Notes: generated by a model not told the origin, from the letters alone. Counted from the stretch's first letter, positions 3,315-59,547 are shown. The stretch is 64,000 nt of DNA from IMGVR_UViG_3300017917_002374:124001-188000, one strand, 5' to 3'. A program made the numbers and translations.

Positions 3315-3703
3315 TCAAGGGCATTTACTCAGGCGGCAAGTATGTCCAAGTAAACAATGGACAGACGCCGTCTGTTAGCATATACAACAGTGGCAACAGT
3401 TTTTCCAACGGCGCCCAAGGTTTTGCTGGACAGCTTCGCTACAATACCAACAATCAAAGCATGGAAGTGTTTGACGGCAACATGTGGCAGATAATCAGTA
3501 CCAGTGTTGCACAAGTCGGGCTGTCGCCAATTGCTGAAGAAGCTCTTGATTGGGTACGTCAAAAGATGCAAGAAGAAAAAGACCTGTTCGAACGCATGAA
3601 ACGACATCCTGGACTCAAAGACTCGTATGATCAGTTCAAAGTAATGGATGCACTTACTGCGGAAGAAGAAAAATCAAAATCTGGAGTATACCAACGTGCC
3701 TGA
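3311..3703 (+). CDS. Hypothetical protein
   Basis: ORF coupled by ATGA overlap. Confidence 0.7.
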   Translation: MIKGIYSGGKYVQVNNGQTPSVSIYNSGNSFSNGAQGFAGQLRYNTNNQSMEVFDGNMWQIISTSVAQVGLSPIAEEALDWVRQKMQEEKDLFERMKRHPGLKDSYDQFKVMDALTAEEEKSKSGVYQRA

Positions 3704-5237
3704 ACAAGATAACCTAACAGCCAAACAAAATGATTATGCTGTGTTTCTTCCTGCTATATCTGGCTTCTATGCGACCTTTATAGGAAAACAACGTGTTAAC
3801 AATGACTATGTTAATCCTGCTCGTATGCCTGCGGCATTACAAGACATGGAGCAATTTAATTGGCTCAACAGCCAGCAAGCCCTGTTCCCATACAAATGGA
3901 GCCTCTACTCAGGAGGACACGCCAATCTAGATCTCAACAAACCAGATGCTAGTGAGGATATGGTTCGTAAACGAGAACCTGGTACTGTACTGCTAGGAGA
4001 TTCAGGTGGATTCCAAATTGCAAAAGGTGTATGGGACGGCGACTGGCGAGCAGGGTCAGGTTGTCCGCGAGCACAAAAGAAACGTGAACAGGCATTGGCT
4101 TGGTTAGACGGTATCGCAGATTACGCCATGGTACTAGATATTCCCAGCTTTGTGATCAACGAAAAGAACGGTTACAAGTCAGGTATACGCACACTGGAAG
4201 AAGCAGCAGATGCCACCAAGTACAACAACGAATATTTTATCAAACATCGTAAAGGTATTGCCAATGGTGGTACCAAGTTCTTGAATGTGTTGCAAGGCGG
4301 AAATCATGCTCATGCTGATGAATGGTACGATATGATGAAAGGTTACTGTGATCCTGCTCAGTATCCAGATCGGCACTTTAATGGTTGGGCCATGGGTGGT
4401 CAGAACATGTGTGATGTACACCTGGTGCTGCGACGTCTAGTGGCACTGCGTCACGACAATCTGCTGCAAGAAGGCGTACATGATTGGATGCACTTCTTGG
4501 GTACTAGTAAACTGGAATGGGCACTATTGCTTACAGACATTCAACGTGCAGTAAGAAAGTATATCAATCCTAACTTTACAATCAGTTTTGACTGTGCCAG
4601 TCCTTTCTTGGCCACTGCCAATGGACAGGTGTATCATCATATTGATTTACCACATGATGGCAAATGGTGCTATCGCATGAGTCCTATTGTGGATGATAAA
4701 AAGTATGCCACAGACACAAGACCATTTGGTCAGGCTGTGCTGGCTGACAAACTGATTGATGTGTTTGATGAAAGTCCAATCAGTCGCAACATGATGATGA
4801 AAGATGTGTGCGTGTACAAACCAGGTGATCTAAACAAGAACGGCAAAGAAGGTCGTACCAGTTGGGACAGTTTCAGCTACATGCTGCTCATGGGGCACAA
4901 TGTGTGGACACACATTGAGGCTGTGCAACGAGCCAATAGAGAATATGACAACGGCACTTGGCCCAACATGCTGTGGAACGCACGTGGCGATCATGCCAAG
5001 TTTAGAGACATTGTGGATGCTATCTTTGCAACACCGGATCGTGCAGAAGCAGAAGCCATAATTGAACACTATGATCGCTATTGGATGGACATTGTGGGTA
5101 CCCGCGGGTTCAAAGGCAAGAAGACCAAAAATTCAAACACCATGTTCAATGCACTGTTTGAAGTAGAACATGATCAAATGGAACAAGAAGATTTGGACGA
5201 GTCCAAATTGGACGAATTGGAACTTGCTCAAAATTAA
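3696..5237 (+). CDS. dpdA: TGT-fold 7-deazaguanine DNA transglycosylase (DpdA family, possibly DpdA2-like)
   Basis: TGT motifs DSGGFQI, VLDIP, NVLQGG, GWAMGG, HFLG, SFDCASP. GTG start at 3696 with GGAG RBS. Clustered with folE/queD/queE. Confidence 0.82.
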   Translation: MPEQDNLTAKQNDYAVFLPAISGFYATFIGKQRVNNDYVNPARMPAALQDMEQFNWLNSQQALFPYKWSLYSGGHANLDLNKPDASEDMVRKREPGTVLLGDSGGFQIAKGVWDGDWRAGSGCPRAQKKREQALAWLDGIADYAMVLDIPSFVINEKNGYKSGIRTLEEAADATKYNNEYFIKHRKGIANGGTKFLNVLQGGNHAHADEWYDMMKGYCDPAQYPDRHFNGWAMGGQNMCDVHLVLRRLVALRHDNLLQEGVHDWMHFLGTSKLEWALLLTDIQRAVRKYINPNFTISFDCASPFLATANGQVYHHIDLPHDGKWCYRMSPIVDDKKYATDTRPFGQAVLADKLIDVFDESPISRNMMMKDVCVYKPGDLNKNGKEGRTSWDSFSYMLLMGHNVWTHIEAVQRANREYDNGTWPNMLWNARGDHAKFRDIVDAIFATPDRAEAEAIIEHYDRYWMDIVGTRGFKGKKTKNSNTMFNALFEVEHDQMEQEDLDESKLDELELAQN

Positions 5238-5257: not shown

Positions 5258-6079
5258 ATGCTCAACAGTTCTCTTGTAAAGAATATTGCACAGTCTTATG
5301 TGATGTGCAAGTACCTGTCTGCACTATGTGCTAGAATAGGTCCACACAACTACATGAACAGTGTGTTGAGAGTTGAACACGGCACCGGAACTGGCTTTTT
5401 TGGCATTGGAAACAGTGGCAGTACTGACTGTGTTAAAGAACGTTTTCGTGCTACCACTGATGCACTTGATCAAAATTTTGCCACTTGGCAAAAGATTGAT
5501 TTTGTAAGTGAAGGCTGTGTTGGTATAACCATGCGTGACTCGCAAGTACATCGTGTAGAGCATACTAGAGAAGTGATTGATTTATACAAACAGTTTGAAC
5601 AAGAATACATTATTACCGGTCGCAATTTCACTCCTGTTGAATTAGGAACTTGGTTAATTGAAAATCAAATTGTATGCTTGATTCAACAATCAGAACAAAA
5701 ATCCAAGACAGAATATAACGACAATCTTCCCTTTAGCAAATACAGTGCCAAGATATACTATAAAGGTACAGATATTTCTGCATATACCTTGGATCAGATC
5801 AAACAACTGAATAGACAACGGTTTGCTGGGGTAATTAAAGATTTACAACAGTTTAATTTTACAGATTTGCTAGATAAACAATCTAGAAATTTACTGCATG
5901 CCAAGAAAAAACACACACTGCCTCCCATGGACCTAGCTGTGAAATATTTTGATAATGAATTTTATCTGTTAAAAGAACACTATCATCACAAGCTGAACAA
6001 AAGAACAAATCCAAAAGACCGTTGGTACTGTGCCAACGACACTGCCAGATATATTTCATGGCTTGATACTGCGGTCTAA
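5258..6079 (+). CDS. Hypothetical protein
   Basis: 273-aa ORF; exact start uncertain. Confidence 0.65.
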   Translation: MLNSSLVKNIAQSYVMCKYLSALCARIGPHNYMNSVLRVEHGTGTGFFGIGNSGSTDCVKERFRATTDALDQNFATWQKIDFVSEGCVGITMRDSQVHRVEHTREVIDLYKQFEQEYIITGRNFTPVELGTWLIENQIVCLIQQSEQKSKTEYNDNLPFSKYSAKIYYKGTDISAYTLDQIKQLNRQRFAGVIKDLQQFNFTDLLDKQSRNLLHAKKKHTLPPMDLAVKYFDNEFYLLKEHYHHKLNKRTNPKDRWYCANDTARYISWLDTAV

Positions 6080-6103
6080 ATATAATACTCAAAGGATAAT
6101 ATT

Positions 6104-7078
6104 ATGGCAGAACTATTTAACATCAACAACAAGAAAAAAGTAATCAATCGCATTGGACGAGAATATTGGATCTGGAACACAGACAAATTGTATGAACAGC
6201 GCATGGCAAGAGAAAATGGTCCTTATCAATCACGCAACTTAGTAATGAATCGTAGATTGCTGCCCAATGCTAGAACTGTGATTGATGTAGGTGCTAATAT
6301 TGGCATGAATACCATTGAATATGCCACGTGGTGCAAAGACATTAAAAGTTTTGAGCCTATACAGAGCAGTCTAGAACTCATGAAGTTGAATGTGGATATT
6401 GCTCGTGCAGCCAAACTCAAAGGACGCTATTGGGATAACCGACTCAAACAAGTGCGACATCAACCAGATCACGACGACGGCTGGTTCAAGCAAGCAGATG
6501 GTACCTTTGCCAGTCTTGACTTAGTGGGCAATATTGAATATTTTGAATATGCTCTTGGAAAAGAAAATACCACTATTGTGATGGAACAAAAAACAGCAGA
6601 GTGCAGTAGAGGCGATGCTGTGCTGGCACAGGGGCGAAACACTCATAATCCTACACAAACAGCAGAACAAAGAACACTTGACAGTTTTAACTTTCAGGAT
6701 GTAGACTTAATCAAGATTGACGTTGAAGGCACCGAACTGTTTGTGCTTCAAGGCGCTGTGGATACCATACGTCGCTGTCATCCTGTAGTACAGGTAGAAC
6801 TGCGCGATACTCACTGCAAGAGATTTGGATACAAGTGCGACGATATTATTGATCTCATGATGAGTTTAGGTGATTATGTGATGTGCGACTTCAACGGCAA
6901 CGATCTAGGGAAAACTTATCAAAAGGTATCAGGTGTAATGGATAGATTTTTTGTTCCTAGATCAATATTTGTTGCTACAGAATTTAAAAACAAACGAGTG
7001 CATCCAGGCATGAAAAAAACAGCCAAAAAACCCAAAGTAGATCAAACAGTTGTGGACAATCTTTTAACAGTAGACTAA
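6104..7078 (+). CDS. FkbM-family methyltransferase
   Basis: VIDVGANIG SAM motif, SFEP, IKIDVEGTELFVLQGA. Confidence 0.88.
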   Translation: MAELFNINNKKKVINRIGREYWIWNTDKLYEQRMARENGPYQSRNLVMNRRLLPNARTVIDVGANIGMNTIEYATWCKDIKSFEPIQSSLELMKLNVDIARAAKLKGRYWDNRLKQVRHQPDHDDGWFKQADGTFASLDLVGNIEYFEYALGKENTTIVMEQKTAECSRGDAVLAQGRNTHNPTQTAEQRTLDSFNFQDVDLIKIDVEGTELFVLQGAVDTIRRCHPVVQVELRDTHCKRFGYKCDDIIDLMMSLGDYVMCDFNGNDLGKTYQKVSGVMDRFFVPRSIFVATEFKNKRVHPGMKKTAKKPKVDQTVVDNLLTVD

Positions 7079-7087
7079 GGAGACTAG

Positions 7088-7294
7088 ATGTATAAGGAAA
7101 AAATCCGACACCTTGAAGAAATGCATCGCGTGTTAAACAAGCAAATTGACGACATGGAACGCAATCATCCTCATGTGGAAGTAAACAAACTTGCTGAAAT
7201 GAAAAAACAAAAATTAGCCTTGCGTGACGAAATCAGTCGCTTGACACGATTGCAATGGGAACATGACCACGAACGTGTGGACCTAGGAGATTGA
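7088..7294 (+). CDS. DUF465/YdcH-like small coiled-coil protein
   Basis: LEEMHRVLNKQI...MKKQKLALRDEI pattern; AGGAG RBS. Confidence 0.7.
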   Translation: MYKEKIRHLEEMHRVLNKQIDDMERNHPHVEVNKLAEMKKQKLALRDEISRLTRLQWEHDHERVDLGD

Positions 7295-7295
7295 T

Positions 7296-7808
7296 ATGGA
7301 TAGACCAGGCCACGGCTTAGCTAAGATGTTTACAGGCATAGAAGTAGAACACACACCAGCACATGGTATGAAAACCTTGTTTGTGGTAGGTGTGCAACCA
7401 AAAGAATTGGTTGAAGCTGCATGCGTAGCCTACAAATGTCAACATGTGTATTTTGGTGCCAATCAAAGTTTTCCAAAATTGCATACCAACAGCAACGATT
7501 GGACAGTTTGGGAAAACATGATTTTTCCATTTCTTTCCCAAGGATATCTCTGCACTCTGGATCTTGATGTGAGTTGTGTAGAAGGCTTGCTGGAAAGCGG
7601 ACTTGTTGAACATCATAATTTTATTCCAATGATTTCAATTAAGTTGCCCTATATCAATCAACTAGGGTATAATGCTACAATCAAACTAGATGATAAAGAT
7701 TTTGCAGCAACCAATCCTGGCGTTTGGTGTCACAGTGTGCATGAGTTACAAAAACGCGAACAATTTACCAGTTGGTCTAAATATAGTCAAGATGAGGTCA
7801 TACGATGA
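7296..7808 (+). CDS. Hypothetical protein in dpd cluster
   Basis: 170-aa ORF between dpdA and dpdL-like gene. Confidence 0.7.
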   Translation: MDRPGHGLAKMFTGIEVEHTPAHGMKTLFVVGVQPKELVEAACVAYKCQHVYFGANQSFPKLHTNSNDWTVWENMIFPFLSQGYLCTLDLDVSCVEGLLESGLVEHHNFIPMISIKLPYINQLGYNATIKLDDKDFAATNPGVWCHSVHELQKREQFTSWSKYSQDEVIR

Positions 7809-8008
7809 AAGAATTCTTAATAAGAGATGAAGCAGCATTTAAATTGCGAGGCACTATGAAACCGTGTTTGCGTCCAGATGATCTCTGGTGCGTAGAATTC
7901 ACCGGCGAACAGTACAATGACAAAGGCGAAATGACTGGTGCCAGCACCTATCAATTTTTTCTAACCAATGAACACATAAGCAAAATGGTACAGGGATTAC
8001 AATCATGA
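7805..8008 (+). CDS. Hypothetical protein
   Basis: ATGA-coupled ORF. Confidence 0.65.
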   Translation: MKEFLIRDEAAFKLRGTMKPCLRPDDLWCVEFTGEQYNDKGEMTGASTYQFFLTNEHISKMVQGLQS

Positions 8009-8451
8009 CCATTCAAGCAGAACGTGAGCAAACGGATATCAATCAACAGGTAGCAGATCGCATGATTTGGGTATCCTTTGCTAAAGAAGGTATCCATAAA
8101 TACCCCGCAGCCTTGGAGGATCCAAAACTTGCAGACGTATCTTTTCTGGGTTATCCCCATCGTCATATGTTTCACTTCCGGGTGTCAATCTCGGTCTTTC
8201 ACAATGACCGTGATATCGAATTCATTCAATTCAAACGGTGGCTTGAATCATTGTATTCAGGGCAAGAAAATTGTTTGCGACTGGACTACAAAAGCTGTGA
8301 AATGATTGCAGATGATCTATATGTCCAAATTAATAGTCGTTATCCAGGCAGACATGTTATAATCAGTGTAAGCGAAGATAATGAAAACGGTTGTGAGATT
8401 GTGTATCGCGATCCACGCACACCAGAAAAAACTTTTCAACATCCAGTCTAA
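8005..8451 (+). CDS. dpdL: QueD-paralog T-fold protein, DpdL-like (putative CDG decarboxylase)
   Basis: LGYPHRHMF matches LxxxHRHxF. DRDIEFIQFK and SCEMIADDLY parallel QueD DFxxLK and xxENxA motifs. A canonical queD is present separately. Confidence 0.7.
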   Translation: MTIQAEREQTDINQQVADRMIWVSFAKEGIHKYPAALEDPKLADVSFLGYPHRHMFHFRVSISVFHNDRDIEFIQFKRWLESLYSGQENCLRLDYKSCEMIADDLYVQINSRYPGRHVIISVSEDNENGCEIVYRDPRTPEKTFQHPV

Positions 8452-8460
8452 TAGGAGAAA

Positions 8461-8739
8461 ATGATGGCTCAGCCAAAGTGGCTCAAAAAGTATTTGACCA
8501 TGCGTCCCGAAGTATCCAAGATCTACGATGATCTTGAGCAGTATCGCGAGTTCTGCGTTAATTATGGTCATGTGTTTGACGAACGTGATCTTTACAATGA
8601 ACGTAACACCAGTTATCAAGATTTCGTAAGACATCAAAGTGGGAAACATGTAAAGAATCGTTGGTATCAACGAGACGATGATCGTCCTCGTGTGCCAAGA
8701 GGACACAACAACTATCGCACAAGGAATAACAATGCGTAA
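8461..8739 (+). CDS. Hypothetical protein
   Basis: AGGAG RBS, 92 aa. Confidence 0.7.
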   Translation: MMAQPKWLKKYLTMRPEVSKIYDDLEQYREFCVNYGHVFDERDLYNERNTSYQDFVRHQSGKHVKNRWYQRDDDRPRVPRGHNNYRTRNNNA

Positions 8740-9910
8740 GCTCTACTACATGGGGCTTGAACCTTACAAAGCACGATACACCTTACAGTTACAAGAGTGG
8801 AATCGTGCTGTGTTTGAACGGCGCGGTATCAACTATGAAATTGTTACTGGAGAAACTCTTAGTAATGATCAAGCTATTGTAACAGGACAGGTGCTGGATG
8901 CACATGGTCGCACATACTTTGGCATGAGTCAGTTGATGAACCTTATTCGTAAAATGAAAGCTGGAGAGCTTAATCATGCAGATGTTGTATACTTTGAAGA
9001 CATGTTTCAACCCGGCATCGAGAGCCTACCTTACATTCTCAATCAAATTGATCCTGTTAACCGTCCTAGGATTTTTGTGCGTTGTCTTGCTCAATCCATT
9101 GACCCAGATGATTTCGTACATGTATGGGGCATGGGCGAATGGATGGGCCATTATGAAAAGATGGTGGACAGTTTTGTAGATGGTGTATTGGCTACCAACG
9201 AAGAAATGGTCATGCACATGAAGGTGGCAGGTTGGAAGAGCAAGATCTACAACATTTCAGGCTTGGCCTTTGGTAAAGACGAAGTTCGCTCGCGTGTGCC
9301 CGGTGAACTGCGTCCATTCAACGAACGTAAGATGCGTGTGGGCTTTGCTGCACGTTGGGATCAAGAAAAGCAACCAGATTTCTTCATGGATCTCATTGAA
9401 GCATATCACGAACGTCATCCAGGATCTGGCATTGAGTTCTGTTTGTTTTCTGGTGCTAAACTAAAAAGCAACAACGACAGCTACATGGCTCGTACTCGTG
9501 CAATGCAAGCTGAAGGCAAGTTGACCATACATGAGGATCTGGAAAAGAATGAATACTACGAGCTTCTTAACGATACTCGTGTACTATTTAATTGTGCTTT
9601 GCAAGATTGGGTCAGCAACACTGTGTCCGAAGCCGATACACTGGGAGCAAATGTTCTCTATCCTGCGTATAGGAGTTTTCCTGAGTCTTTTGCTAATGAT
9701 CATGAACGTCTTTATGTACCCTGGTCAATAGACGATGCTCTGGACAAACTGGAAAAGCTACTGCGGGCACCGCATCCTAATCAAGGCAAAATCAGTGACT
9801 GGACCAATGGCACTGTGGACCGTATCCTTGATATCATTACAGGGCAAGGTGAGCAATGGCAGCGCATGAACACAGACTATCGCAAACACACACACGAAAG
9901 CAAGTTCTAA
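8732..9910 (+). CDS. GT-B glycosyltransferase (GT4-like)
   Basis: GFAARWDQEK..F and DWVSNTVSEA (E-x7-E-like region), YPAYRSFPE; ATG at 8732. Confidence 0.75.
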   Translation: MRKLYYMGLEPYKARYTLQLQEWNRAVFERRGINYEIVTGETLSNDQAIVTGQVLDAHGRTYFGMSQLMNLIRKMKAGELNHADVVYFEDMFQPGIESLPYILNQIDPVNRPRIFVRCLAQSIDPDDFVHVWGMGEWMGHYEKMVDSFVDGVLATNEEMVMHMKVAGWKSKIYNISGLAFGKDEVRSRVPGELRPFNERKMRVGFAARWDQEKQPDFFMDLIEAYHERHPGSGIEFCLFSGAKLKSNNDSYMARTRAMQAEGKLTIHEDLEKNEYYELLNDTRVLFNCALQDWVSNTVSEADTLGANVLYPAYRSFPESFANDHERLYVPWSIDDALDKLEKLLRAPHPNQGKISDWTNGTVDRILDIITGQGEQWQRMNTDYRKHTHESKF

Positions 9911-10146
9911 TGAGCTTTGACCTCTGGTACCAAATGTTGAAAGATTCTATATACTGGCAGAACATACCAGGAGACATGGCTGTTGACATCTATCATCGTA
10001 CTGTTGTGGCGTGGGGGCATGGTCAAAACTACTATCTACAATCAGGTCCGGAACGTGTGGATTTGACAAAACTCTATGAACAATGTAAACTAATTGAAAC
10101 TCTTAAAGGAACAAATTATGACAAAGAAATCCCCTGGGGCGGTTAA
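9910..10146 (+). CDS. Hypothetical protein
   Basis: TAATG-coupled start at 9910. Confidence 0.55.
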   Translation: MSFDLWYQMLKDSIYWQNIPGDMAVDIYHRTVVAWGHGQNYYLQSGPERVDLTKLYEQCKLIETLKGTNYDKEIPWGG

Positions 10147-10336
10147 AACAATCAGCGATAAACTGACCAAAGTTGGTGAATCATTCACAGTGAACATGTA
10201 CGATAATGGATACATGATTGAAGTAAGTGGAAGAAACAGCCAAGGTGATTGGGCAACTGCCAAAATCATGGTATCAAATCTCAACGATCTAACCACACTG
10301 ATTGCCGAAGCAGCAGAAATGGAACGGGACAATTAA
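10118..10336 (+). CDS. Hypothetical protein
   Basis: AAGGA RBS, ATG at 10118. Confidence 0.65.
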   Translation: MTKKSPGAVKTISDKLTKVGESFTVNMYDNGYMIEVSGRNSQGDWATAKIMVSNLNDLTTLIAEAAEMERDN

Positions 10337-11334
10337 TGTCTACCACTGTGTTAGTAACAGGTGCCACTGGCTATATTGGTAGTCATGTGTGCAAACATCT
10401 ACTTGATGCAGGTTATAGAGTAGTAGGTGTGGATCGTGTGAGTAGAGATCATGCTCTTCCTTACATGACTTTTTTAATCAATGAAGACTATTACAGCGAC
10501 GGTGTAGTTAATTTTTTAAATAGCGAAACTGTGCATGCGGTGGTTCATTGTGCAGGTACCAGTTTGGTAGGTCCTAGTGTGTTGGATCCTGCAGAATACT
10601 ATACCAACAACGTGGCCAAAACAGCTATGTTTCTGGATGTGCTGCGTCGTTTGCCTAATCCACCTGCGTTTGTGTTTTCTAGCAGTGCCAGTGTGTATGG
10701 ATCACCAGATGTGGATATCATCACTGAAGACACACCATGGAATCCTGTGAGTCCATATGGTCAGACCAAGGCCATGATTGAACTCATGCTCACTGACATG
10801 TGCAAAGCATACAACATGGCAGCCATGAGCTTGCGTTACTTCAATGCTTGCGGCGCAGATGTTGATTCTGGTGCACTAGGACAAGCACCAGGTGCCACAC
10901 ATATCATAGCCAGATTGTTAGAAAGCATAAGAGATCGTAAACAGTTTATTTTATATGGCAATGACTACAACACTCCTGATGGCAGTTGCATTAGAGATTA
11001 TGTGCATGTAGATGATCTTGCTCGTGCTCATGTATATGCCATACAGTATCTATTGAGTTTTGAACACAATCAGCATTACATGGTAAATCTAGGCAGTGGT
11101 CGCGGATACAGTAATGTGGATGTGATTGCTGCTGTGGCAAGACACATTGGACCTGTTGACTTGCTTGAAGGTTCTAGACGTGCTGGCGATCCAGATCGTT
11201 TGGTAGCCAGCAATGATCTGGCTCAAGCCTATCTAGGTTGGTCACCAGAACACTCAGATTTAGAAACCATTATTACCAGTGCGTGGCGTTGGTATAATAA
11301 CACATCAAATCTTGTTGACACAGCATCTAAATAA
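10336..11334 (+). CDS. galE: UDP-glucose 4-epimerase
   Basis: TGATGYIGSH, FSSSASVYG, YGQTK, LRYFNACGA, DGSCIRDYVHV, RRAGDP. Confidence 0.92.
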   Translation: MSTTVLVTGATGYIGSHVCKHLLDAGYRVVGVDRVSRDHALPYMTFLINEDYYSDGVVNFLNSETVHAVVHCAGTSLVGPSVLDPAEYYTNNVAKTAMFLDVLRRLPNPPAFVFSSSASVYGSPDVDIITEDTPWNPVSPYGQTKAMIELMLTDMCKAYNMAAMSLRYFNACGADVDSGALGQAPGATHIIARLLESIRDRKQFILYGNDYNTPDGSCIRDYVHVDDLARAHVYAIQYLLSFEHNQHYMVNLGSGRGYSNVDVIAAVARHIGPVDLLEGSRRAGDPDRLVASNDLAQAYLGWSPEHSDLETIITSAWRWYNNTSNLVDTASK

Positions 11335-11343
11335 GTTTACAAT
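11315..11343 (+). promoter_or_regulatory. sigma70 promoter with embedded TAAATA
   Basis: TTGACA-N17-TACAAT; TAAATA at 11328-11333. Confidence 0.88.
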
Positions 11344-11381
11344 TAACTATTAGCCATCCTCGGCTATAACTCGGAGAACAA

Positions 11382-12149
11382 ATGGTATACAATAAAATAT
11401 ATGTAAGTCACGATGAAGAAACAGCACTTGACGCAATGGCAGGTGATGCTGGTTACGAAATAGGCCAAGCTCACAAACATCTCGCATTTAAAATGCGTCG
11501 CGATGGTAAAAGATTCTGGGCCGGTGACAATATTAGCGAATATGTTGATGGCTACATGAAAGCACAGTTGATTGACGAAGCCACAGCAGCATTTGAACAG
11601 GTACTAGACACACTGTTGATTGATCGCGAAAACGATCCTAATTCAAAAGGCACAGCACGACGTCTTGCCAAGATGTACTTTAACGAAATCATGGCAGGTA
11701 GATATGATCCAGCCCCTGATGCAACCAGTTTCCCAAATCATACAGAAGATCGTTATGCAGGCATGCTGGTTGTTCGTAGCGAATTGCGCAGCATGTGTAG
11801 CCATCATCATCAACCAGTTAATGGAGTAGCATATATTGGAATCATTGCTGCCGATCAGCTGATTGGTCTAAGCAAGTACACTCGTATTGCTCAATGGTGC
11901 GCTCGGCGTGGTACACTTCAAGAAGAACTGTGCAATGATATTGCCAGAGAAATCATGAAAGCCACAGGCAGTAAAGATGTGGGCGTTTATATTCAAGCCA
12001 CACATGGTTGTTGCGAAAATCGTGGTATTATGGCGCACTCCAGTCTTACACAAACCACAGTTCTCACAGGTGTATTCAAAGATGATCCTGCGGTAAAGAA
12101 AGAGTTCATGGACAATATCAAACTGCAACAAGAATTTGCACCGCGATAA
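11382..12149 (+). CDS. folE: GTP cyclohydrolase I
   Basis: GTARRLAKMY, SMCSHHHQP, GLSKYTRI, LQEEL, HGCCENRG. Confidence 0.96.
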   Translation: MVYNKIYVSHDEETALDAMAGDAGYEIGQAHKHLAFKMRRDGKRFWAGDNISEYVDGYMKAQLIDEATAAFEQVLDTLLIDRENDPNSKGTARRLAKMYFNEIMAGRYDPAPDATSFPNHTEDRYAGMLVVRSELRSMCSHHHQPVNGVAYIGIIAADQLIGLSKYTRIAQWCARRGTLQEELCNDIAREIMKATGSKDVGVYIQATHGCCENRGIMAHSSLTQTTVLTGVFKDDPAVKKEFMDNIKLQQEFAPR

Positions 12150-12160
12150 GGAGAGCTAAT

Positions 12161-12721
12161 ATGGCATTTTGGAAAGTTTCAACCACTCACAAAAAATCTT
12201 GTGAAGAACACATGATTTGGTATCAGTCTGGTCGCAGTTTCAAAATTATCACAGGATATCGTTGGGGAACATTCACAGTAGAAACCAATGACGACAATCC
12301 ACCTGAAGGCATAGACCCAGACAACCCAGAAGGTATCAACATGTATGATTATTTCAGCGACAATGCAGATTGCGCTGAACTAGACAGCATGGATGATGGT
12401 TGGTACATGGATTTTGAATTTGACGACGAGATGTTCTCAGAAGATGAACAAGAACAACTGCGCCAGCTATGGGAAGATGATAGCTTTTCTGCTTTAGAAG
12501 GTGCAGGCTGGGTCAATGACGAAACCGAAGCATGGTTGTTTGGACCATTAGAAATCACTAGAGAAGATGTTGAACCTTCTGCTGATGAATGGATCAAGGC
12601 AGACAATTTACCAGAATTACAGGATGTGTTTGAAAAAGACATGACTGACAATGTGCCAAAATCTGCCACGATTCCACTATGGCCATTTCCAACAGGAGAT
12701 AAAGATGATAAATCAAGTTAA
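12161..12721 (+). CDS. Acidic hypothetical protein
   Basis: AGGAG RBS, 186 aa. Confidence 0.75.
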   Translation: MAFWKVSTTHKKSCEEHMIWYQSGRSFKIITGYRWGTFTVETNDDNPPEGIDPDNPEGINMYDYFSDNADCAELDSMDDGWYMDFEFDDEMFSEDEQEQLRQLWEDDSFSALEGAGWVNDETEAWLFGPLEITREDVEPSADEWIKADNLPELQDVFEKDMTDNVPKSATIPLWPFPTGDKDDKSS

Positions 12722-12932
12722 GCAAGCAGCAGAAAATCTCATCAAGCGTGTTATGAACATGCAAACTTTTAAAATCATTAGACCACTACCTGACGAATTT
12801 GAGTTTCGCGGACCGGCACCGTTTGATATCCGGGTGGACAAAGAATGCATTATGACATTTACGGTTCACTGTATGACCTTACAAGAAGCCAATCAAATGG
12901 TTGATGAATATCTTGAAAAAAATTCTATTTAA
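12705..12932 (+). CDS. Hypothetical protein
   Basis: AGGAG RBS before ATG 12705. Confidence 0.65.
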   Translation: MINQVKQAAENLIKRVMNMQTFKIIRPLPDEFEFRGPAPFDIRVDKECIMTFTVHCMTLQEANQMVDEYLEKNSI

Positions 12933-13101
12933 TACTAAAATATACGTGTCCTTACTGGCATGTTGTATGTCCGTGGTGTGTATTGCACAAGCCATACTCA
13001 ACATAGATAATATGTCTGCTGCCATGGCGTGGGCAGTGGCTTGTGCAGCCTGGATACCGCATGTGTTTGTAAACCGACTAACCAAGGAAGATATAACATG
13101 A
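12901..13101 (+). CDS. Small membrane protein
   Basis: Two hydrophobic stretches. Confidence 0.5.
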   Translation: MMNILKKILFNTKIYVSLLACCMSVVCIAQAILNIDNMSAAMAWAVACAAWIPHVFVNRLTKEDIT

Positions 13102-13307
13102 GAGATCAATTAATAGACACACTACGAGTAAACTTTTCAGCCAATTTACTCAAACACAAAATGAATGTGGAAATCATGCTCAAGAAACCCATGGCCATTC
13201 ACGATCACACTGACTGGATGACTGCTGTGGAAAATGAGATGGCCATGATTGCAGAGTATGAAGACAAGCTGAGTGTGTTGAACAAACACTTTGGGAGCAA
13301 AGAATAA
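13098..13307 (+). CDS. Hypothetical protein
   Basis: AAGGA RBS, ATG 13098. Confidence 0.7.
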   Translation: MRDQLIDTLRVNFSANLLKHKMNVEIMLKKPMAIHDHTDWMTAVENEMAMIAEYEDKLSVLNKHFGSKE

Positions 13308-13903
13308 TGGGTGCCATGCGAGAAAAAGATTCTGCAGACTTTGATCTAGAAGCATTCATTGATCTGTTTGATGAGGCAATTACCAGCGACGATCCAAATG
13401 TTCAAAAAACTCTACAGCATCTAATGGTTATTGCCGCGTTGGCTCGCAATCATAATCAGCACAATCACCGCAATGGCCCTCTGCGCAGACTGTTTGAAGA
13501 CGTTCGCGACATAAACAACAGACTTGGCCATCTAGAAACCAATCTTAGAGGTTATCAAAAAGGCTATGGTCCAGTTCCTACGCCATATCCTAGTATGCCT
13601 TTGAATCCAGTTCCTATTTGGACTGCTCCTACTACAGGCACACGCTGGCCACCTTCCCCAGGAACTTACCCACCAGGCACACTGTTTGCACAAGGTGTGG
13701 GCGGTCCAGTTGGGAGTGGCGCAGCACTAGCTGGTGCCCAAAGCACTACCAGCTACACCTGGGATCCTGTGGCGGCTAACAGCATTACTAAGAAAATCAA
13801 CAGCGGAACTCCTGGAGGTATTGCAGAACGTGTGGACGAATTGCTCAAGGATAACAAATACAAAGGCAGCAGTGTAGGAGCACCAGATGTTAAAACTGCT
13901 TGA
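13307..13903 (+). CDS. Hypothetical protein with Pro-rich linker
   Basis: TAATG-coupled ORF. Confidence 0.7.
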   Translation: MGAMREKDSADFDLEAFIDLFDEAITSDDPNVQKTLQHLMVIAALARNHNQHNHRNGPLRRLFEDVRDINNRLGHLETNLRGYQKGYGPVPTPYPSMPLNPVPIWTAPTTGTRWPPSPGTYPPGTLFAQGVGGPVGSGAALAGAQSTTSYTWDPVAANSITKKINSGTPGGIAERVDELLKDNKYKGSSVGAPDVKTA

Positions 13904-14372
13904 GCGTTTGGGCCGCAAGCGTATCATTTATGATCGCATCAACAACGAGCCATATCTTGAACGCTACTATCTGTTCTTGAAAGAAAGAAAACGTTTTCCG
14001 TTTAATGTGTTTCTGCACAAATTCTTAAAAGGCGATCCAGATGATGTACATGATCATCCATGGCCATATGCCACACTGATTTTAAAGGGCGGTTATTATG
14101 AATATGTTCCAGTCTTTAATAGCAAAGGTCTTAAAACTCATGAACTTTGCCATTGGCGTGGGCCCGGACATTTCCGTATTTGTAAGCCTGAGTCTTTTCA
14201 TCGCATTGAACTAAAACCTGGTGTGACTGCATGGACACTGTTCATGCCAGGTCCGCACAAACGAGAGTGGGGATTCCTTACCGGCAAAGATCCATTGAGA
14301 AATTGGGAACACAATGAAAGTTATCTCACCAGGCGCAGTGGCTCTGCGCCCAATCAAAATCACAGTGAATAA
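13887..14372 (+). CDS. Cupin-fold phage protein
   Basis: FLHKF...HDHPW...GGYYE...FHRI...WTLF cupin metal motifs. Confidence 0.7.
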   Translation: MLKLLERLGRKRIIYDRINNEPYLERYYLFLKERKRFPFNVFLHKFLKGDPDDVHDHPWPYATLILKGGYYEYVPVFNSKGLKTHELCHWRGPGHFRICKPESFHRIELKPGVTAWTLFMPGPHKREWGFLTGKDPLRNWEHNESYLTRRSGSAPNQNHSE

Positions 14373-14385
14373 ACTAAACCAAGAA

Positions 14386-14667
14386 ATGGCGGATTGGTGG
14401 ATCATGCAAGGTGCCGAAGCACAGGAAATACATGATCCTTATTGGACGCATTTTCGTGGAAACGTGGTGGACAAACATTATCGTATTCGAATGCCAGGTC
14501 TAGGCGGCAAGTGGAGTCATAAGTTTAATGATGGCAGTGGCATACACCTAATTCATTTGCCAGAAATCTATGCCAGTACTGCCAGTTTGTTTTGTTTAAA
14601 ATTTTTTGATGCTATAATATCACATAACATAGAGGTTCCAAAACATGAAGATTCATTACAACAATAA
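14386..14667 (+). CDS. Hypothetical protein
   Basis: ORF from ATG 14386. Confidence 0.55.
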   Translation: MADWWIMQGAEAQEIHDPYWTHFRGNVVDKHYRIRMPGLGGKWSHKFNDGSGIHLIHLPEIYASTASLFCLKFFDAIISHNIEVPKHEDSLQQ

Positions 14668-15193
14668 ACATTTACACGCATGGTTGCACACGATCATGCG
14701 TCAAATGCAACACTACAATTTCAAACCAGATTACATTGTGGGTATTACTCGTGGAGGATTAATTCCTGCTACTATGTTAAGTCATTATCTTGATGTGCCC
14801 ATGCACACACTGGATGTGAGTTTTAGAGACAGCGGCACAGGACCAGAAAGCAATCTCTGGATGGCCGAAGATGCTTTTGGCTATGTGAACAAAGAGGATC
14901 GTACAGACGAAGGCACAGTTAGTGACCCTAAACTACGCAAGAACATTTTGATTGTGGATGATATTAACGACAGTGGTCGTACACTGCAATGGATCAAGGA
15001 CGATTGGGAAAGTGGTTGCATGCCTCGCAGTGAAGACTGGAATGACGTTTGGCATCATAATGTACAATTTGCGGTAATGGTAGACAACACCGCTAGTAAC
15101 TTTAAAGGTGTTGATTTTTACGGTACAGAAATTAACAAGCAAGAAACACCTGCCTGGGTAGTGTTTCCTTGGGAAAACTGGTGGGAGAATTAA
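14645..15193 (+). CDS. Purine phosphoribosyltransferase (Gpt-like)
   Basis: VGITRGGLIPA, PRPP motif ILIVDDINDSGRTL, WVVFPWE. Confidence 0.88.
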   Translation: MKIHYNNKHLHAWLHTIMRQMQHYNFKPDYIVGITRGGLIPATMLSHYLDVPMHTLDVSFRDSGTGPESNLWMAEDAFGYVNKEDRTDEGTVSDPKLRKNILIVDDINDSGRTLQWIKDDWESGCMPRSEDWNDVWHHNVQFAVMVDNTASNFKGVDFYGTEINKQETPAWVVFPWENWWEN

Positions 15194-15643
15194 ATGCTGA
15201 ATGGTAAACGAGTAGGCTTTACAGCCAGTACATTTGATCTATTGCATGCAGGACATGTGGCCATGTTGCGCGAAGCCAAAGACAAATGTGAGTACCTAAT
15301 ATGTGCATTACAAAATGATCCTACTATGGATAGACCAAACAAAAATCGTCCTGTGCAGAGTATTGTGGAACGGCAGTTGCAACTGATTGGCTGCAAGTAC
15401 GTGGATGAAGTTTGGGTGTACAATACAGAAAAAGATCTAGAGGATCTATTGCTCACACTACCAATAGATGTTAGAATACTTGGCGTTGAATACGAAGGCA
15501 AGGAGTTTACTGGTCGTGAAATATGTCATAAACGTAATATTGAACTTTACTTTAACGGTCGTGATCATAGCTTTAGTAGCAGCGAGCTTCGTCAGCGTGT
15601 GGCATCAGCTGAGGATTCTAAGAAGAGATTAAACGAACAATAA
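15194..15643 (+). CDS. Cytidylyltransferase (TagD-like)
   Basis: STFDLLHAGH (HxGH), PVQSIVER, SSSELR. Confidence 0.88.
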   Translation: MLNGKRVGFTASTFDLLHAGHVAMLREAKDKCEYLICALQNDPTMDRPNKNRPVQSIVERQLQLIGCKYVDEVWVYNTEKDLEDLLLTLPIDVRILGVEYEGKEFTGREICHKRNIELYFNGRDHSFSSSELRQRVASAEDSKKRLNEQ

Positions 15644-15728
15644 ATATTAGTCTCAGCGGTCTCAAGGCATTCATCCCGCTTTACAAATTCTGCATGCCAT
15701 TGCTAACTTTCAGGAGATAACAATGGCA
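15641..15728 (+). promoter_or_regulatory. TAAATA promoter plus pseudoknotted 5' UTR of queD (riboswitch candidate)
   Basis: P1 AGCGG/CCGCT, P2 GGCAT/ATGCC, alternative stem TGCCATTG/CAATGGCA covering the ATG. Confidence 0.6.
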
Positions 15729-16208
15729 AAATTTTACTCAACAAAAACATATGGTAATGACAGAGGTCTGTCATGTTGCTTTAGACAATGGCGTGCCACA
15801 CACAGTCATTGCTCCACACTACACGGTTATTCAATTGGCATTAAACTGATCTTTGAATGCGACACATTAGATGACAAAAACTGGTGCATGGACTTTGGAG
15901 GGCTCAAAGAATTCAAAGCATGGGCCGATCACATGTTTGATCATACATTGGTCATTGCAGAAGATGATCCTCATTTGGAAACATTCAAACAACTAAATGA
16001 AATTACGGGCGGATTCAACGAAAGCGGAGTGTGTGATTTGCGTATTGTGCCTGGAGTAGGCTGTGAAATGTTTGCCAAATTGTGCTATGACAAAATGGCT
16101 GAGCTATTAGCCAGCGGCACGATGCGTTATCCAATCAATCCGACTGTGCGTGTTAAAAGCGTTGAAGTGTTTGAACATGGTGCTAATTCAGCCACATACG
16201 AAGGATAA
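15723..16208 (+). CDS. queD: 6-carboxy-5,6,7,8-tetrahydropterin synthase
   Basis: HCSTLHGYS, MDFGGLK, DHMFDH, GCEMFA, VEVFEHGANSA. Confidence 0.93.
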   Translation: MAKFYSTKTYGNDRGLSCCFRQWRATHSHCSTLHGYSIGIKLIFECDTLDDKNWCMDFGGLKEFKAWADHMFDHTLVIAEDDPHLETFKQLNEITGGFNESGVCDLRIVPGVGCEMFAKLCYDKMAELLASGTMRYPINPTVRVKSVEVFEHGANSATYEG

Positions 16209-16242
16209 AACAGTTTTTTAGCATTTTTGCCCGTTGTCAGTA

Positions 16243-16271
16243 TTGACATTCGGGCTGTTTTGTTTTATAAT
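16243..16271 (+). promoter_or_regulatory. sigma70 promoter
   Basis: TTGACA-N17-TATAAT. Confidence 0.88.
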
Positions 16272-16301
16272 GTTGTTTCAATATTTCTTGAGGATTCTAT
16301 C

Positions 16302-16625
16302 ATGTCTCGTAAATTCAGCACCTACTCGCATTCAGTTAAAGATCTCAAAATCAATGTACGGTTTGAAGCAGAAGTATTAAATGAACAAGGTCTGGTCGTT
16401 GACGACAGTTTTGGTCTTGAGTTTCATGAATATTTTCATAGCTTGGAGATTGCTGCTGATGCCACACTTGAAAGCACAGCTCAAACTGTGTATGAACATT
16501 TTGAACAAAAACTGAATTCAGACCCTGCTAATGTTTATACCAACTTGATGGGCGACGAGTATCCTCGGGTAAAACTTATCTTTGTAGACGTACACGGCGC
16601 TTACACTGCTACCTATGGAGATTGA
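16302..16625 (+). CDS. Hypothetical protein
   Basis: GAGG RBS before ATG 16302, downstream of promoter. Confidence 0.7.
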   Translation: MSRKFSTYSHSVKDLKINVRFEAEVLNEQGLVVDDSFGLEFHEYFHSLEIAADATLESTAQTVYEHFEQKLNSDPANVYTNLMGDEYPRVKLIFVDVHGAYTATYGD

Positions 16626-16628
16626 TTA

Positions 16629-17069
16629 ATGAACATGCATAAACGTATTTTTGATGGCCCAGACCATTTAGACGAAAGCGATGCACCATGGGACGACACA
16701 GTGAGAAAAGACTTTCACGTGGCGGTGTTTAACGATAAGTACCCTGTGACCTCGGGTCATATGCTGTTTGTTCCTCAGTACAATAGCATCAGTGTACTCA
16801 AAGAAACCTTTGAGGATGCATTTGATTACGGAAAACAAAAAGTTGACACAGGGGAATGGGACGGCTTCAACATCGGACTTAACTATGGCGAAGCCGCGGG
16901 ACAGACTGTGTCATGGCCTCATATTCATCTTATACCCCGTAGAAAAGGCGATGTGCCGGATCCAGTAGGTGGTGTACGGAATACAATTCCAGGCAAAGGC
17001 AACTATAGAAAGATGCCAACCACAGTTCAAACAGTAGTTGGCGACAGTGAAGGCGGAGACATAGATTAA
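16629..17069 (+). CDS. HIT-family nucleotide hydrolase
   Basis: YPVTSGH, GEAAGQTVSWPHIHLIPR histidine triad. Confidence 0.92.
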   Translation: MNMHKRIFDGPDHLDESDAPWDDTVRKDFHVAVFNDKYPVTSGHMLFVPQYNSISVLKETFEDAFDYGKQKVDTGEWDGFNIGLNYGEAAGQTVSWPHIHLIPRRKGDVPDPVGGVRNTIPGKGNYRKMPTTVQTVVGDSEGGDID

Positions 17070-17950
17070 TGATAATTGTAACAGGAGATCGTGGATTCAT
17101 TGGCAGTGAGTTAAAGCAGTATCTTGAGTCAGTTGGACACAAGGTTCACGGTCTTGATTGGGCCACTAGAGGCAAAACCTATACTGTAGATGAACCAGTT
17201 GAATGGATCTATCATATGGGTGCAGTAAGCAGTACCGACGCAGGCGATTGGCAGGAACTGGTTACAAAAAACATTCAAGACACACAGGCATGGATACGTG
17301 CAGCCGAGCAATGGAACTGTGGTATAACCTATGCCAGCAGTGCTAGTACATATGGTCCATGGACCAACAGTCCAGAATGGGGACCGGTGCAACCACAACA
17401 CTTGTATGGAGTTAGCAAGCTGGCAATTGACAATTGGTGTGCAGAACAATCATTTAGCGTACCTGTGCAAGGTGTGAGATTTTTTAATGTGTACGGACGT
17501 AATGAACAACACAAACGCCAGCCCAGTCCAGTCAGACGTTATCTTGATCAAGCAGCTACCAAGCGCGAACTCACAGTATGGCATCACAATGGTCGTTATG
17601 GATCAAGAGATTTTATCAGTATAGATGATACTATTCATGCCATGGAACAGTTACGTGCTGCTAGAGTAAGTGGAGTGTACAACATAGGCACAGGCAAAAC
17701 TGATAGTTTTTATGACATTGCCAAAACCTGTCAACGACTGGCAGGAGTGACCAATTGTAAGTTGGCGGTGGTCCCCATGCCTGAACACATGTTGGCTACT
17801 TATCAATGGGAAAGCTGTGCTAATTTGGACAAATTAAGGCAAGTTATTCCTGATTGGAATCCAGAAAACATACATGACTGGCTTGAACACAACTGGCAAA
17901 CCCTGTATAATAAAACAATTGAGGACTTAAACAATGAAATTCAAAATTAG
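17069..17950 (+). CDS. NAD-dependent epimerase, HldD/RfaD-like
   Basis: GDRGFIGS, HMGAVSST, YASSASTYG, YGVSK, RFFNVYG, SRDFI, YQWESCA. Confidence 0.82.
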   Translation: MIIVTGDRGFIGSELKQYLESVGHKVHGLDWATRGKTYTVDEPVEWIYHMGAVSSTDAGDWQELVTKNIQDTQAWIRAAEQWNCGITYASSASTYGPWTNSPEWGPVQPQHLYGVSKLAIDNWCAEQSFSVPVQGVRFFNVYGRNEQHKRQPSPVRRYLDQAATKRELTVWHHNGRYGSRDFISIDDTIHAMEQLRAARVSGVYNIGTGKTDSFYDIAKTCQRLAGVTNCKLAVVPMPEHMLATYQWESCANLDKLRQVIPDWNPENIHDWLEHNWQTLYNKTIEDLNNEIQN

Positions 17951-40245: not shown

Positions 40246-40749
40246 ATGATAGCAAGCATTTTTTCAGTTGACCAAACCGGAGGAGTTGGCAATAGAGGTA
40301 CATTACCTTGGCGACATCACCCAGAAGATATGGCATGGTTTAAAGAACTTACTACCAATCATATTGTGATCATGGGACGTCGTACATGGGATGATCCTCG
40401 TATGCCAAAACCTTTACCGCAACGCACTTGTATTGTGGCCAGCAGTTCCAATATCTCATCACATCCTCGTATACGCATAATCAGTGGGGACCTAAACAGT
40501 AAAATTCTTGAATTAGAACAACTGTATCCTAGCAAAACCATTTGGCTCATAGGCGGTGTTAATCTATTGAACCAATGTAAAAGCATCACCGATTATGCAT
40601 ATATCACTCATCGTAAGGGCAGTTTCTTTAGCGACACTCGCATTGATCTTGCTCGTTATATGGCAGGCATGCGAATTACCAGCAGTAGACCTAGCACGGA
40701 TAAAATGTTAAACTTTGCTGTATACAAGAACATTGACCCATTTAGATAA
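40246..40749 (+). CDS. folA: Dihydrofolate reductase
   Basis: GNRGTLPW...DMAWFKELT..IMGRRTW..PKPLPQR, LIGG. Confidence 0.93.
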   Translation: MIASIFSVDQTGGVGNRGTLPWRHHPEDMAWFKELTTNHIVIMGRRTWDDPRMPKPLPQRTCIVASSSNISSHPRIRIISGDLNSKILELEQLYPSKTIWLIGGVNLLNQCKSITDYAYITHRKGSFFSDTRIDLARYMAGMRITSSRPSTDKMLNFAVYKNIDPFR

Positions 40750-49880: not shown

Positions 49881-49884
49881 TATT

Positions 49885-54080: not shown

Positions 54081-54138
54081 AATTTTTGTACTTGCGAAGT
54101 GAGAGTATAACTACTTATAACAAGAACGAGAAAGAAAA

Positions 54139-57052: not shown

Positions 57053-57111
57053 AAACTTTCCTTGTGGATATATTGGAACTAAATATCTTTACAACTATTT
57101 AGTGCTATGGA

Positions 57112-59544: not shown

Positions 59545-59547
59545 AAA

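Follow-up and report, generated by a model that had tools for sequence, protein, structure and literature searches.

Our findings indicate that a predicted GT-B glycosyltransferase (GT) encoded by a jumbo phage is tightly linked to the genes that place 7-deazaguanine in phage DNA, and suggest that phages carrying it, several of them cultured, may bear a sugar-decorated purine that has not been identified chemically. All 156 non-redundant GT loci with adequate flanking sequence also carry DpdL. The locus was examined within a 64,000-nucleotide window (IMGVR_UViG_3300017917_002374:124001-188000) of a complete 355-kb phage genome. In the preliminary description, a GT-B enzyme and GalE were said to lie co-oriented within a deazaguanine cluster, between dpdL and folE, with no dCMP/dUMP hydroxymethylase visible in the window, and this observation holds, with the coordinates as given there. 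One correction is needed, as the window does contain a ThyA-family gene (40749-41666); it is a canonical thymidylate synthase rather than a hydroxymethylase, so the point stands in substance. The features of the locus are as follows.

3648-5237 (+), divergent DpdA/TGT-family transglycosylase (p529, 529 aa), whose true start is probably about 20 codons downstream
6104-7078 (+), FkbM-family methyltransferase (PF05050, E 6.4e-19; TIGR01444), a rare accessory gene
7296-7808 (+), conserved protein of no assigned family (p170), a homologue of the ACP17 hypothetical protein that lies between FolE and DpdA
8005-8451 (+), DpdL, a QueD-like T-fold protein and proposed CDG decarboxylase (phrog_17812)
8461-8739 (+), 92-aa ORF (p92) with a basic C-terminal tail
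8732-9910 (+), predicted GT-B (GT4-like, retaining-type) glycosyltransferase, 392 aa
9910-10146 (+), small accessory ORF p78
10118-10336 (+), small accessory ORF p72
10336-11334 (+), GalE, UDP-glucose 4-epimerase
11382-12149 (+), FolE, GTP cyclohydrolase I (PF01227, E 7.5e-40)
14645-15193 (+), purine-type phosphoribosyltransferase (PF00156; weak xanthine/HGPRT NCBIfam hits), a homologue of the BUCT-ZZ01 "XGPRT" that lies inside that phage's cluster
15194-15643 (+), RfaE-domain-II-like sugar-phosphate nucleotidyltransferase (PF01467; TIGR02199 E 6.7e-19, below cut-off)
15723-16208 (+), QueD, CPH4 synthase (PF01242, E 1.6e-16; 47% identical to BUCT-ZZ01 QueD)
16629-17069 (+), HIT-family protein (PF01230)
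17069-17950 (+), SDR resembling ADP-heptose 6-epimerase, sub-threshold (TIGR02197, 172.7 < 274.6 bits)
17934-18830 (+), QueE, CDG synthase, radical SAM (44% identical to BUCT-ZZ01 QueE, E 2e-80; sub-threshold QueE NCBIfam hits at the N-terminus)

The genes from DpdL to GalE, followed by FolE, form a co-oriented, translationally coupled string, in which stop and start codons overlap for p92/GT, GT/p78 and p72/GalE. No + strand terminator-like site lies between 8005 and 11334, and a near-consensus sigma-70-like site lies at 11315-11343, though the promoter and terminator scans were not above the shuffled expectation. DpdL carries the published signature LxxxHRHxF, in place of CxxxHGH, as LGYPHRHMF (Cui et al. 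2023, PMC10516641), and is 56% identical to the ACP17 DpdL used in that study and 33% identical to the DpdL of Cellulophaga phage phiST. GalE passes the NCBIfam equivalog threshold (TIGR01179, 309.8 > 262.3 bits; PF01370, E 3.9e-53) and contains both the NAD-binding GxxGxxG (GATGYIGS) and the catalytic YxxxK (YGQTK). In accordance with the published DpdL-type pathway, the cluster contains FolE, QueD, QueE and a DpdA but no QueC; a weak QueC-like PP-loop gene (49885-50520; 37 bits, C-terminal part only) lies 38 kb away and is not in the cluster. A megablast search of positions 6000-14000 against phage records returned no match.

The transglycosylase was identified by motif, profile-profile alignment and predicted fold, as PF01702 gave no hit in the genome, which is also true of the DpdA3-type proteins of ACP17, X1 and BUCT-ZZ01. 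The protein carries the TGT hallmark DSGGFQ, and hhalign to those DpdA3-type proteins gave 92% probability (E 6e-7). An AF2 model of only moderate quality (pLDDT 61.6, pTM 0.70) returned TGT/QTRT1 proteins as all of its top 50 Foldseek hits, and structural comparison (VIA) gave Z 14.1, 14.1 and 13.6 to ArcTGT, QTRT2 and TGT, and Z 11.7 to DpdA (7ui4). In GT loci this protein and the DpdA3 type are mutually exclusive (173 / 21 / 0 both). A three-sequence DpdA3 HMM found nothing among all ORFs of the genome, HMMER profiles of p529 and of DpdA3 found nothing among PDB sequences, and a homologue search with p529 found only unannotated close relatives.

The start of the GT at 8732 is supported by 392-aa homologues at 100% coverage. 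Its AF2 model is very confident (pLDDT 96.1, pTM 0.93) and presents a full GT-B/GT4-like fold of two Rossmann-like domains with an inter-domain cleft (Foldseek E about 1e-12), with full-length matches at Z 21-26 to many GT4 enzymes. The best of these are retaining GT4 enzymes, namely SPS (Z 26.4), BshA (25.7) and PglH (24.8), and the pterin glucosyltransferase BGluT (5zer, 23.5) is also among the good matches, with MshA lower (19.1); sequence identity to GT4-family small-molecule enzymes is only 9-14%. T4 alpha-glucosyltransferase (1y6f) ranks 24th at Z 21.1, below generic small-molecule GT4 enzymes at Z 24-26, so the fold does not single out DNA as the acceptor. No Pfam AGT or T4-Gluco-transf hit (PF11440 or PF09198) was obtained at E <= 0.01. 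The only Pfam match of this protein was sub-threshold (PF13524, 19.8 < 25 bits), while the family members P0295 (34.8 > 27) and P0282 (27.7 > 26.4) pass Pfam GT1-clan thresholds. Across 117 homologues at about 30-60% identity, R208 and K213 are invariant and E300 is at least 90% conserved, and these residues align with the GRLxxxKG loop and the LEAMA helix of WlaC and GlgM. It is conceivable that the protein is an inactive GT-fold scaffold or regulator of the DpdL/DpdA machinery, for which its constant association with DpdL and its sub-threshold Pfam scores could be cited; however, the conservation of the donor-site Arg, Lys and Glu across a deep family, together with co-occurring GalE and a second GT that imply real sugar chemistry, makes this very unlikely.

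The GT belongs to a large, essentially phage-only family, with about 8,000 clusters at 90% identity and 792 representatives at 50% identity, and is very abundant in metagenomes. In BFVD only the ACP17 protein and one unnamed viral protein are close (TM 0.72-0.87). Among IMG/VR loci with at least 1.5 kb of flanking sequence, 145/145 plus 11/11 non-redundant GT loci contain DpdL, which is present in every one of 14 GT clusters (60% single linkage), usually with FolE and QueE and often with QueD, and lies within 600 bp of the GT in 100 of the 156. In cultured phages the GT lies next to or within about 3 kb of DpdL, as seen in BUCT-ZZ01, ACP17, X1 (X1/BUDD), PA5oct (hhalign 99.6%), Phosso and BCSR5. 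A search of 185,579 species genomes found only 7 hits, all on contigs binned into metagenome-assembled genomes, of which five show the DpdL-type cluster, one shows its core genes without a called DpdL or GT ORF, and one stops just after the GT. The reverse dependence does not hold, as six DpdL phage lineages lack the GT anywhere in their genomes, including phiST, whose DNA contains plain dDG (PMC10516641). This is the pattern expected of a decorating enzyme that depends on a core pathway.

Variable sugar genes surround the GT, as in known DNA glycosylation systems. With genes assigned by direct BLAST, GalE is found in 61/69 and 8/10 loci of this GT clade, often adjacent to the GT, and in 0/8 loci of distant GT clades, and a second GT is found in 17/69 and 10/10 loci. 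The phosphoribosyltransferase is present in 24/69 and 4/10 loci, and among the 69 p529-type loci p170 is present in 51, p92 in 60 and the RfaE-like nucleotidyltransferase in 31.

Based on the interpretation of these data, we favor, with moderate confidence, a model in which the GT is a pathway-specific, nucleotide-sugar-dependent enzyme that serves as an optional decorating module of the DpdL-type 7-deazaguanine pathway. In this view, FolE, QueD and QueE make 7-carboxy-7-deazaguanine (CDG), which DpdL is proposed to convert to 7-deazaguanine, although its decarboxylase activity has never been demonstrated (PMC10516641). The divergent DpdA would exchange this base for guanine in phage DNA, and the GT would then add a hexose to the deazaguanine-derived base, most likely on DNA, from UDP-galactose or UDP-glucose kept in balance by the phage GalE. 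The likely value of the resulting sugar-hypermodified purine would be to hide dDG from restriction enzymes and from dDG-specific host DNA glycosylases. What the analysis establishes is the identity of the genes, the fold, the conservation of the donor-site residues, the linkage of GT and DpdL and the absence of known pyrimidine acceptor routes, while the acceptor (base, atom, and DNA versus free base), the sugar, the order of steps, the decarboxylation by DpdL and sugar transfer to a base in duplex DNA remain inferred. No chemistry was observed. 7-Deazaguanine has no hydroxyl, so the acceptor would have to be N2, O6, a ring carbon or the CDG carboxylate, none of which has precedent for a DNA glycosyltransferase.

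The preliminary description had proposed that the GT may glycosylate a 7-deazaguanine derivative or CDG using UDP-galactose from GalE, giving an undescribed base, and we consider this interpretation partly supported. Two conditions named beforehand as able to refute it, a pyrimidine hydroxymethylase elsewhere in the genome and a GT distribution unlinked to dpd genes, were examined and neither was found. The complete 355-kb genome has a single PF00303 hit, a bona fide thymidylate synthase (NF002497, 363.5 > 327 bits; about 55% identical to solved TS), and no Tet_JBP or C5 DNA methylase was found in it. Glycosylation of a modified pyrimidine (5hmC, 5hmU or 5hoC), as in T-even, SP10-like or RB69-like phages, is therefore very unlikely, even though all known phage DNA glycosylation is on pyrimidines (PMC13326640) and T4 alpha-glucosyltransferase is a structural relative, as the distribution of the GT also follows DpdL and not ThyA homologues. 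The role proposed for GalE and UDP-galactose has only clade-specific support.

A possible but less likely alternative is that the GT acts before insertion, on the free base or a pathway intermediate, for example by making an N2-glycosyl or acyl-glycoside derivative of CDG or DG that is the true substrate of DpdL or DpdA, in which case the sugar might or might not remain in the final DNA base. The closest folds are small-molecule GT4 enzymes (BshA, MshA, LmbT, SenB and the pterin GT), the family is acidic (median pI 5.8), and the conserved residues of its N-terminal, acceptor domain are mostly acidic, which is not usually seen in a DNA-binding surface. The GT is tightly coupled to DpdL, and ACP17 dpdA plus dpdL without the GT failed to give dDG in E. 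coli (PMC10516641). There is also chemical precedent, as HuiG glycosylates a free 7-deazapurine base in huimycin biosynthesis (bioRxiv 10.64898/2026.04.15.718813). Against this, phiST and five other DpdL lineages do without the GT, and phiST still makes dDG, while a second GT and varied sugar-nucleotide genes look more like glycan elaboration on a final product. It is unlikely that the GT modifies something unrelated to deazaguanine, such as a phage or host protein, a cell-envelope glycan or a pterin (a biopterin-glucoside-like product from FolE plus a PTPS-like enzyme), and sits in the cluster only because metabolic genes are grouped together. The fold alone does not identify the acceptor, a pterin glucosyltransferase is among the good matches, and FolE and PTPS-fold enzymes also start pterin pathways; however, linkage to DpdL in 156/156 loci, across 14 GT clusters and very different genome backbones of 100-470 kb, is hard to explain without shared function. 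QueE, which commits the pathway to deazapurines, and a DpdA-type transglycosylase accompany the GT, and the family is essentially absent from cellular genomes.

In comparison to known systems, the T4 alpha-/beta-glucosyltransferases and other phage DNA glycosyltransferases acting on 5hmC, 5hmU and 5hoC likewise involve a phage-encoded GT-B enzyme, an optional decorating step that depends on a core base-replacement pathway, and lineage-variable sugar-nucleotide genes and extra GTs. Here, the only available modified base is a purine analogue without a hydroxyl, and no hydroxymethylase or hydroxylase is encoded. The phiST pathway shares FolE, QueD, QueE, DpdL and a divergent DpdA, with no QueC in the cluster, but has no GT, GalE or phosphoribosyltransferase. 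In the huimycin/dapiramicin systems of actinomycetes, a GT transfers a UDP-sugar onto a 7-deazaguanine-type base made by FolE, QueD and QueE, and a methyltransferase is also present, as an FkbM methyltransferase is near the GT here; those enzymes act on a free base in secondary metabolism, in clusters without nucleic-acid insertion enzymes, and HuiG serves here only as a chemical precedent.

All known glycosylated DNA bases are pyrimidines built on a hydroxymethyl or hydroxyl handle, and a glycosylated 7-deazaguanine would extend DNA glycosylation to purines and would need new acceptor chemistry. We found no description of this in the literature that could be searched, which did not include the supplementary tables of Cui et al. 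Tentatively, and somewhat less likely than not, GT-bearing DpdL phages, including the abundant freshwater jumbo-phage clade of this window and the cultured phages PA5oct, ACP17, X1/BUDD, BCSR5, Phosso and BUCT-ZZ01, carry a hexosylated 7-deazaguanine in their virion DNA, which in lineages with a second GT might bear a di-glycosyl group. This would be the first sugar-hypermodified purine in any DNA, made by a new family of DNA purine glycosyltransferases through an N- or C-glycosidic linkage. It would also address why ACP17 dpdA plus dpdL failed to make dDG in E. coli, how phages might escape the recently described dDG-specific defence glycosylases, and the nature of the modified G of the therapeutic-candidate phage PA5oct, whose DNA resists restriction enzymes with G in their sites and whose base is unidentified (PMC12191111).

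Searches of Pfam, PHROGs, NCBIfam and the Atlas gave no lead for p170 or p92. The C-terminal 290 residues of P0282, a fused GT, showed no Pfam domain, no similarity to DpdA3 and no Atlas lead, and the N-terminal extension of the Bakedbeans DpdL fusion is not GT-like. Among the 80 closest related loci, p92 lies between DpdL and the GT wherever that stretch is covered, with a further ORF intervening before the GT in a few, whereas the FkbM gene is found in only 1 and p78 in only 2, and the position of p72 varies.

The window (bases 124001-188000) lies within a complete phage genome of 354,959 bp with direct terminal repeats, and all of the genes between its family-B DNA polymerase and a flap endonuclease lie on the + strand. 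The genes that bear on the proposed modification pathway are as follows.

78-2513, family-B DNA polymerase
3648-5237 (+), 529-aa protein (p529) that fits a divergent DpdA
6104-7078 (+), FkbM-family methyltransferase
7296-7808 (+), conserved protein of unknown function (p170)
8005-8451 (+), DpdL
8461-8739 (+), 92-aa ORF (p92)
8732-9910 (+), predicted glycosyltransferase (GT)
9910-10146 (+), small ORF
10118-10336 (+), small ORF
10336-11334 (+), GalE
11382-12149 (+), FolE
14645-15193 (+), purine-type phosphoribosyltransferase
15194-17950 (+), an RfaE-domain-II-like nucleotidyltransferase, a HIT protein and a heptose-epimerase-like SDR, interleaved with QueD and QueE
15723-16208 (+), QueD
17934-18830 (+), QueE
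21075-22064, flap endonuclease

The observation made in the preliminary description, that a GT-B enzyme and galE sit co-oriented inside a deazaguanine cluster, is confirmed. Stop and start codons overlap at three junctions in the string that runs from DpdL to FolE, and no + strand terminator-like site was found to interrupt it. A near-consensus sigma-70-like promoter (TTGACA, 17-nt spacer, TACAAT) at 11315-11343, the GalE-FolE junction, was the only strong signal near these genes, though the scan as a whole was not above chance. DpdL carries the published signature LxxxHRHxF and is 56% identical to the ACP17 protein that was used as DpdL by Cui et al. 2023, whereas GalE passes the curated GalE equivalog threshold. 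QueD and QueE complete the route to 7-carboxy-7-deazaguanine (CDG). Two conserved proteins of unknown function flank DpdL and are candidate additional components of the pathway: p170 is shared with ACP17, where it lies between FolE and DpdA, and p92, which has a basic tail, lies between DpdL and the GT across the clade of loci that carry p529. The FkbM-family methyltransferase upstream of DpdL recalls the pairing of methyltransferase and GT in huimycin biosynthesis, but it is not conserved, being present in only one of the 80 nearest relatives.

A search of the genome with PF01702 found no TGT. The p529 protein nonetheless fits a divergent DpdA, as it carries the TGT motif DSGGFQ and matches the DpdA3-type proteins of ACP17, X1 and BUCT-ZZ01 by profile-profile comparison (92% probability, E 6e-7). 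The two types are mutually exclusive in related loci, with 173 loci having p529, 21 having a DpdA3-type protein and none having both. The AF2 model of p529 is only moderately confident (pLDDT 61.6), yet all of the top 50 Foldseek hits are tRNA-guanine transglycosylases, and in structural alignment with VIA-align the top three matches are ArcTGT, QTRT2 and TGT, with bacterial DpdA scoring Z 11.7. Homologues of p529 are found in PA5oct-like phages, Phosso and a Vibrio jumbo phage, and its replacement of the DpdA3-type enzyme suggests that it may represent an unnamed DpdA subfamily. On this evidence from sequence and predicted structure, the window encodes a complete DpdL-type pathway for putting 7-deazaguanine into DNA. 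A purine-type phosphoribosyltransferase recurs inside the GT-bearing deazaguanine clusters (24/69 p529-type loci and 4/10 DpdA3-type loci, and also PA5oct and BUCT-ZZ01). It could recycle the guanine released by DpdA into GMP or, alternatively, could make a deazapurine nucleotide, as ToyH and TubE do.

The GT itself is barely recognized by sequence profiles, with a single weak match to PF13524 (19.8 bits) and no NCBIfam or PHROG assignment. An alignment of 117 sequences, however, gave an AF2 model at pLDDT 96.1 with a full GT-B fold, for which the best structural matches are retaining GT4 enzymes, including sucrose-phosphate synthase (Z 26.4), BshA (Z 25.7), PglH (Z 24.8) and the pterin glucosyltransferase BGluT (Z 23.5), while T4 alpha-glucosyltransferase scores Z 21.1. 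Residues R208, K213 and E300 are invariant or nearly so, and align with the phosphate-binding loop and the catalytic-helix Glu of GT4 enzymes, and some relatives pass Pfam GT1 thresholds. The protein therefore looks like an active nucleotide-sugar transferase, as inferred from sequence and predicted structure, though the fold does not say what the acceptor is.

Co-occurrence of the GT with DpdL had been named in advance as the principal test of a link to deazaguanine, and the linkage proved to be tight. The family is large, with about 8,000 clusters at 90% identity and 792 representatives at 50%, and is essentially phage-only. A scan of 185,579 species genomes gave 7 hits, all on contigs binned into metagenome-assembled genomes, of which five show the same cluster, one shows its core genes without a called DpdL or GT ORF, and one stops just after the GT. 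We then examined 232 IMG/VR loci, seeded from three different family members and annotated with locally built HMMs. Of the non-redundant GT loci with at least 1.5 kb on both sides, 145/145 in the main GT cluster contain DpdL, as do 11/11 loci in 13 further clusters defined at 60% single linkage, and in 100 of these 156 loci DpdL lies within 600 bp of the GT. Every GT cluster has DpdL nearby, and most loci also show FolE and QueE, and many QueD. Among cultured phages, the GT sits beside DpdL in BUCT-ZZ01 (63% identical GT), ACP17, X1, Phosso, BCSR5 and PA5oct. In PA5oct, a well-studied therapeutic-candidate phage, the gene concerned (EST35_0317; 7843-8904 of the fetched locus L237) is annotated as hypothetical but belongs to the GT family by profile comparison (hhalign probability 99.6%, E 8.5e-25), and lies between the p529-type DpdA and DpdL.

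The converse does not hold. The phages phiST, RHph_I1_18, Bakedbeans, Ahp1, D479 and MA9V-3 have DpdL but no family member anywhere in their genomes, in a search in which positive controls were recovered. In the loci examined the GT thus always implies DpdL, but DpdL implies the GT in only about half of lineages, which is the signature of a decorating enzyme that needs the product of the core pathway. Phage phiST, which lacks the GT, has plain dDG (Cui et al. 2023). The phiST gene that lies between DpdL and DpdA3 (CGPG_00066; 8314-8790 of its locus, L238), which was called a protein of unknown function in the 2023 paper, was found to hit AAA_18, a nucleotide-kinase-like domain.

We also considered whether the GT might act on a modified pyrimidine. 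The only ThyA-family gene in the genome (40749-41666 of the window) exceeds the thymidylate-synthase equivalog cut-offs and is about 55% identical to solved thymidylate synthases across its length, and no Tet/JBP dioxygenase or C5 DNA methyltransferase was detectable. The known routes to 5hmC, 5hmU and 5hoC (PMC13326640) are therefore absent, in agreement with the earlier remark that no pyrimidine hydroxymethylase is visible in the window.

The suggestion that GalE supplies UDP-galactose to the GT receives support only within part of the family. A GalE-type epimerase is present in 61/69 p529-type loci, where it is adjacent to the GT in 38, and in 8/10 DpdA3-type loci of the same GT cluster, where it is adjacent in all 8; two of these were checked and pass TIGR01179. 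In contrast, it is present in 0/8 loci of the distant GT clusters (ACP17, X1 and similar). A second, unrelated GT occurs in 17/69 p529-type loci and 10/10 DpdA3-type loci. In BUCT-ZZ01 (7010-8353 of its locus, L002) and 27 IMG/VR loci, this second GT is about 450 aa in length with a weak Glyco_trans_1_4 hit, and lies between FolE and DpdA3 in the cyanophage-like loci, which hints at a disaccharide or at two distinct glycosylations. The RfaE-domain-II-like nucleotidyltransferase, HIT protein and heptose-epimerase-like SDR of this window may form a second nucleotide-sugar route (ADP-heptose-like), though all of the scores are below the curated cut-offs. This lineage-variable sugar toolkit resembles known DNA glycosylation systems and supports UDP-Gal or UDP-Glc as the donor in this clade, but it does not make GalE a defining partner of the GT.

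Our preferred interpretation, which we consider about as likely as not, is that the GT adds a hexose to a deazaguanine-derived base and that the sugar ends up in DNA. The main alternative, which we regard as less likely, is that the GT acts on the free base or an intermediate before insertion. This alternative is favored by the small-molecule character of the closest folds, by the acidic pI of the family (median 5.8) together with the acidic conserved residues of the acceptor domain, and by the huimycin precedent, in which HuiG glycosylates a free 7-deazapurine. A chemical difficulty must be acknowledged, in that 7-deazaguanine has no hydroxyl group, leaving N2, O6, a pyrrole carbon or the CDG carboxylate as the only candidate acceptor sites. 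The proposal in the preliminary description that the GT glycosylates a 7-deazaguanine derivative is thus partly supported, as the linkage to DpdL and the absence of alternative acceptor routes are demonstrated by our analysis, whereas sugar transfer and its product are inferred.

Full-text literature searches found no description of a glycosylated deazaguanine in DNA, nor of this GT. Three published findings frame the question. Cui et al. reported that ACP17 dpdA plus dpdL gave no dDG in E. coli and suggested that further enzymes may be needed; the GT lies between those two genes. The DNA of PA5oct resists restriction enzymes whose sites contain G, and the base responsible has not been identified (PMC12191111). 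Host DNA glycosylases that target dDG phages have been described (bioRxiv 10.1101/2025.10.29.685425), and these give a plausible selective reason to decorate dDG further. The presence of the GT in cultured phages gives the hypothesis particular interest, as it is testable at once.

Elsewhere in the window (44000-64000), the G+C content drops from about 0.42 to about 0.33 at roughly 44 kb. The low-GC block holds a GT2-domain protein (46320-47978), a radical-SAM protein (47971-49341), a weak QueC-like PP-loop protein (49885-50520) and two fatty-acid desaturases (50504-51256 and 51870-52637).
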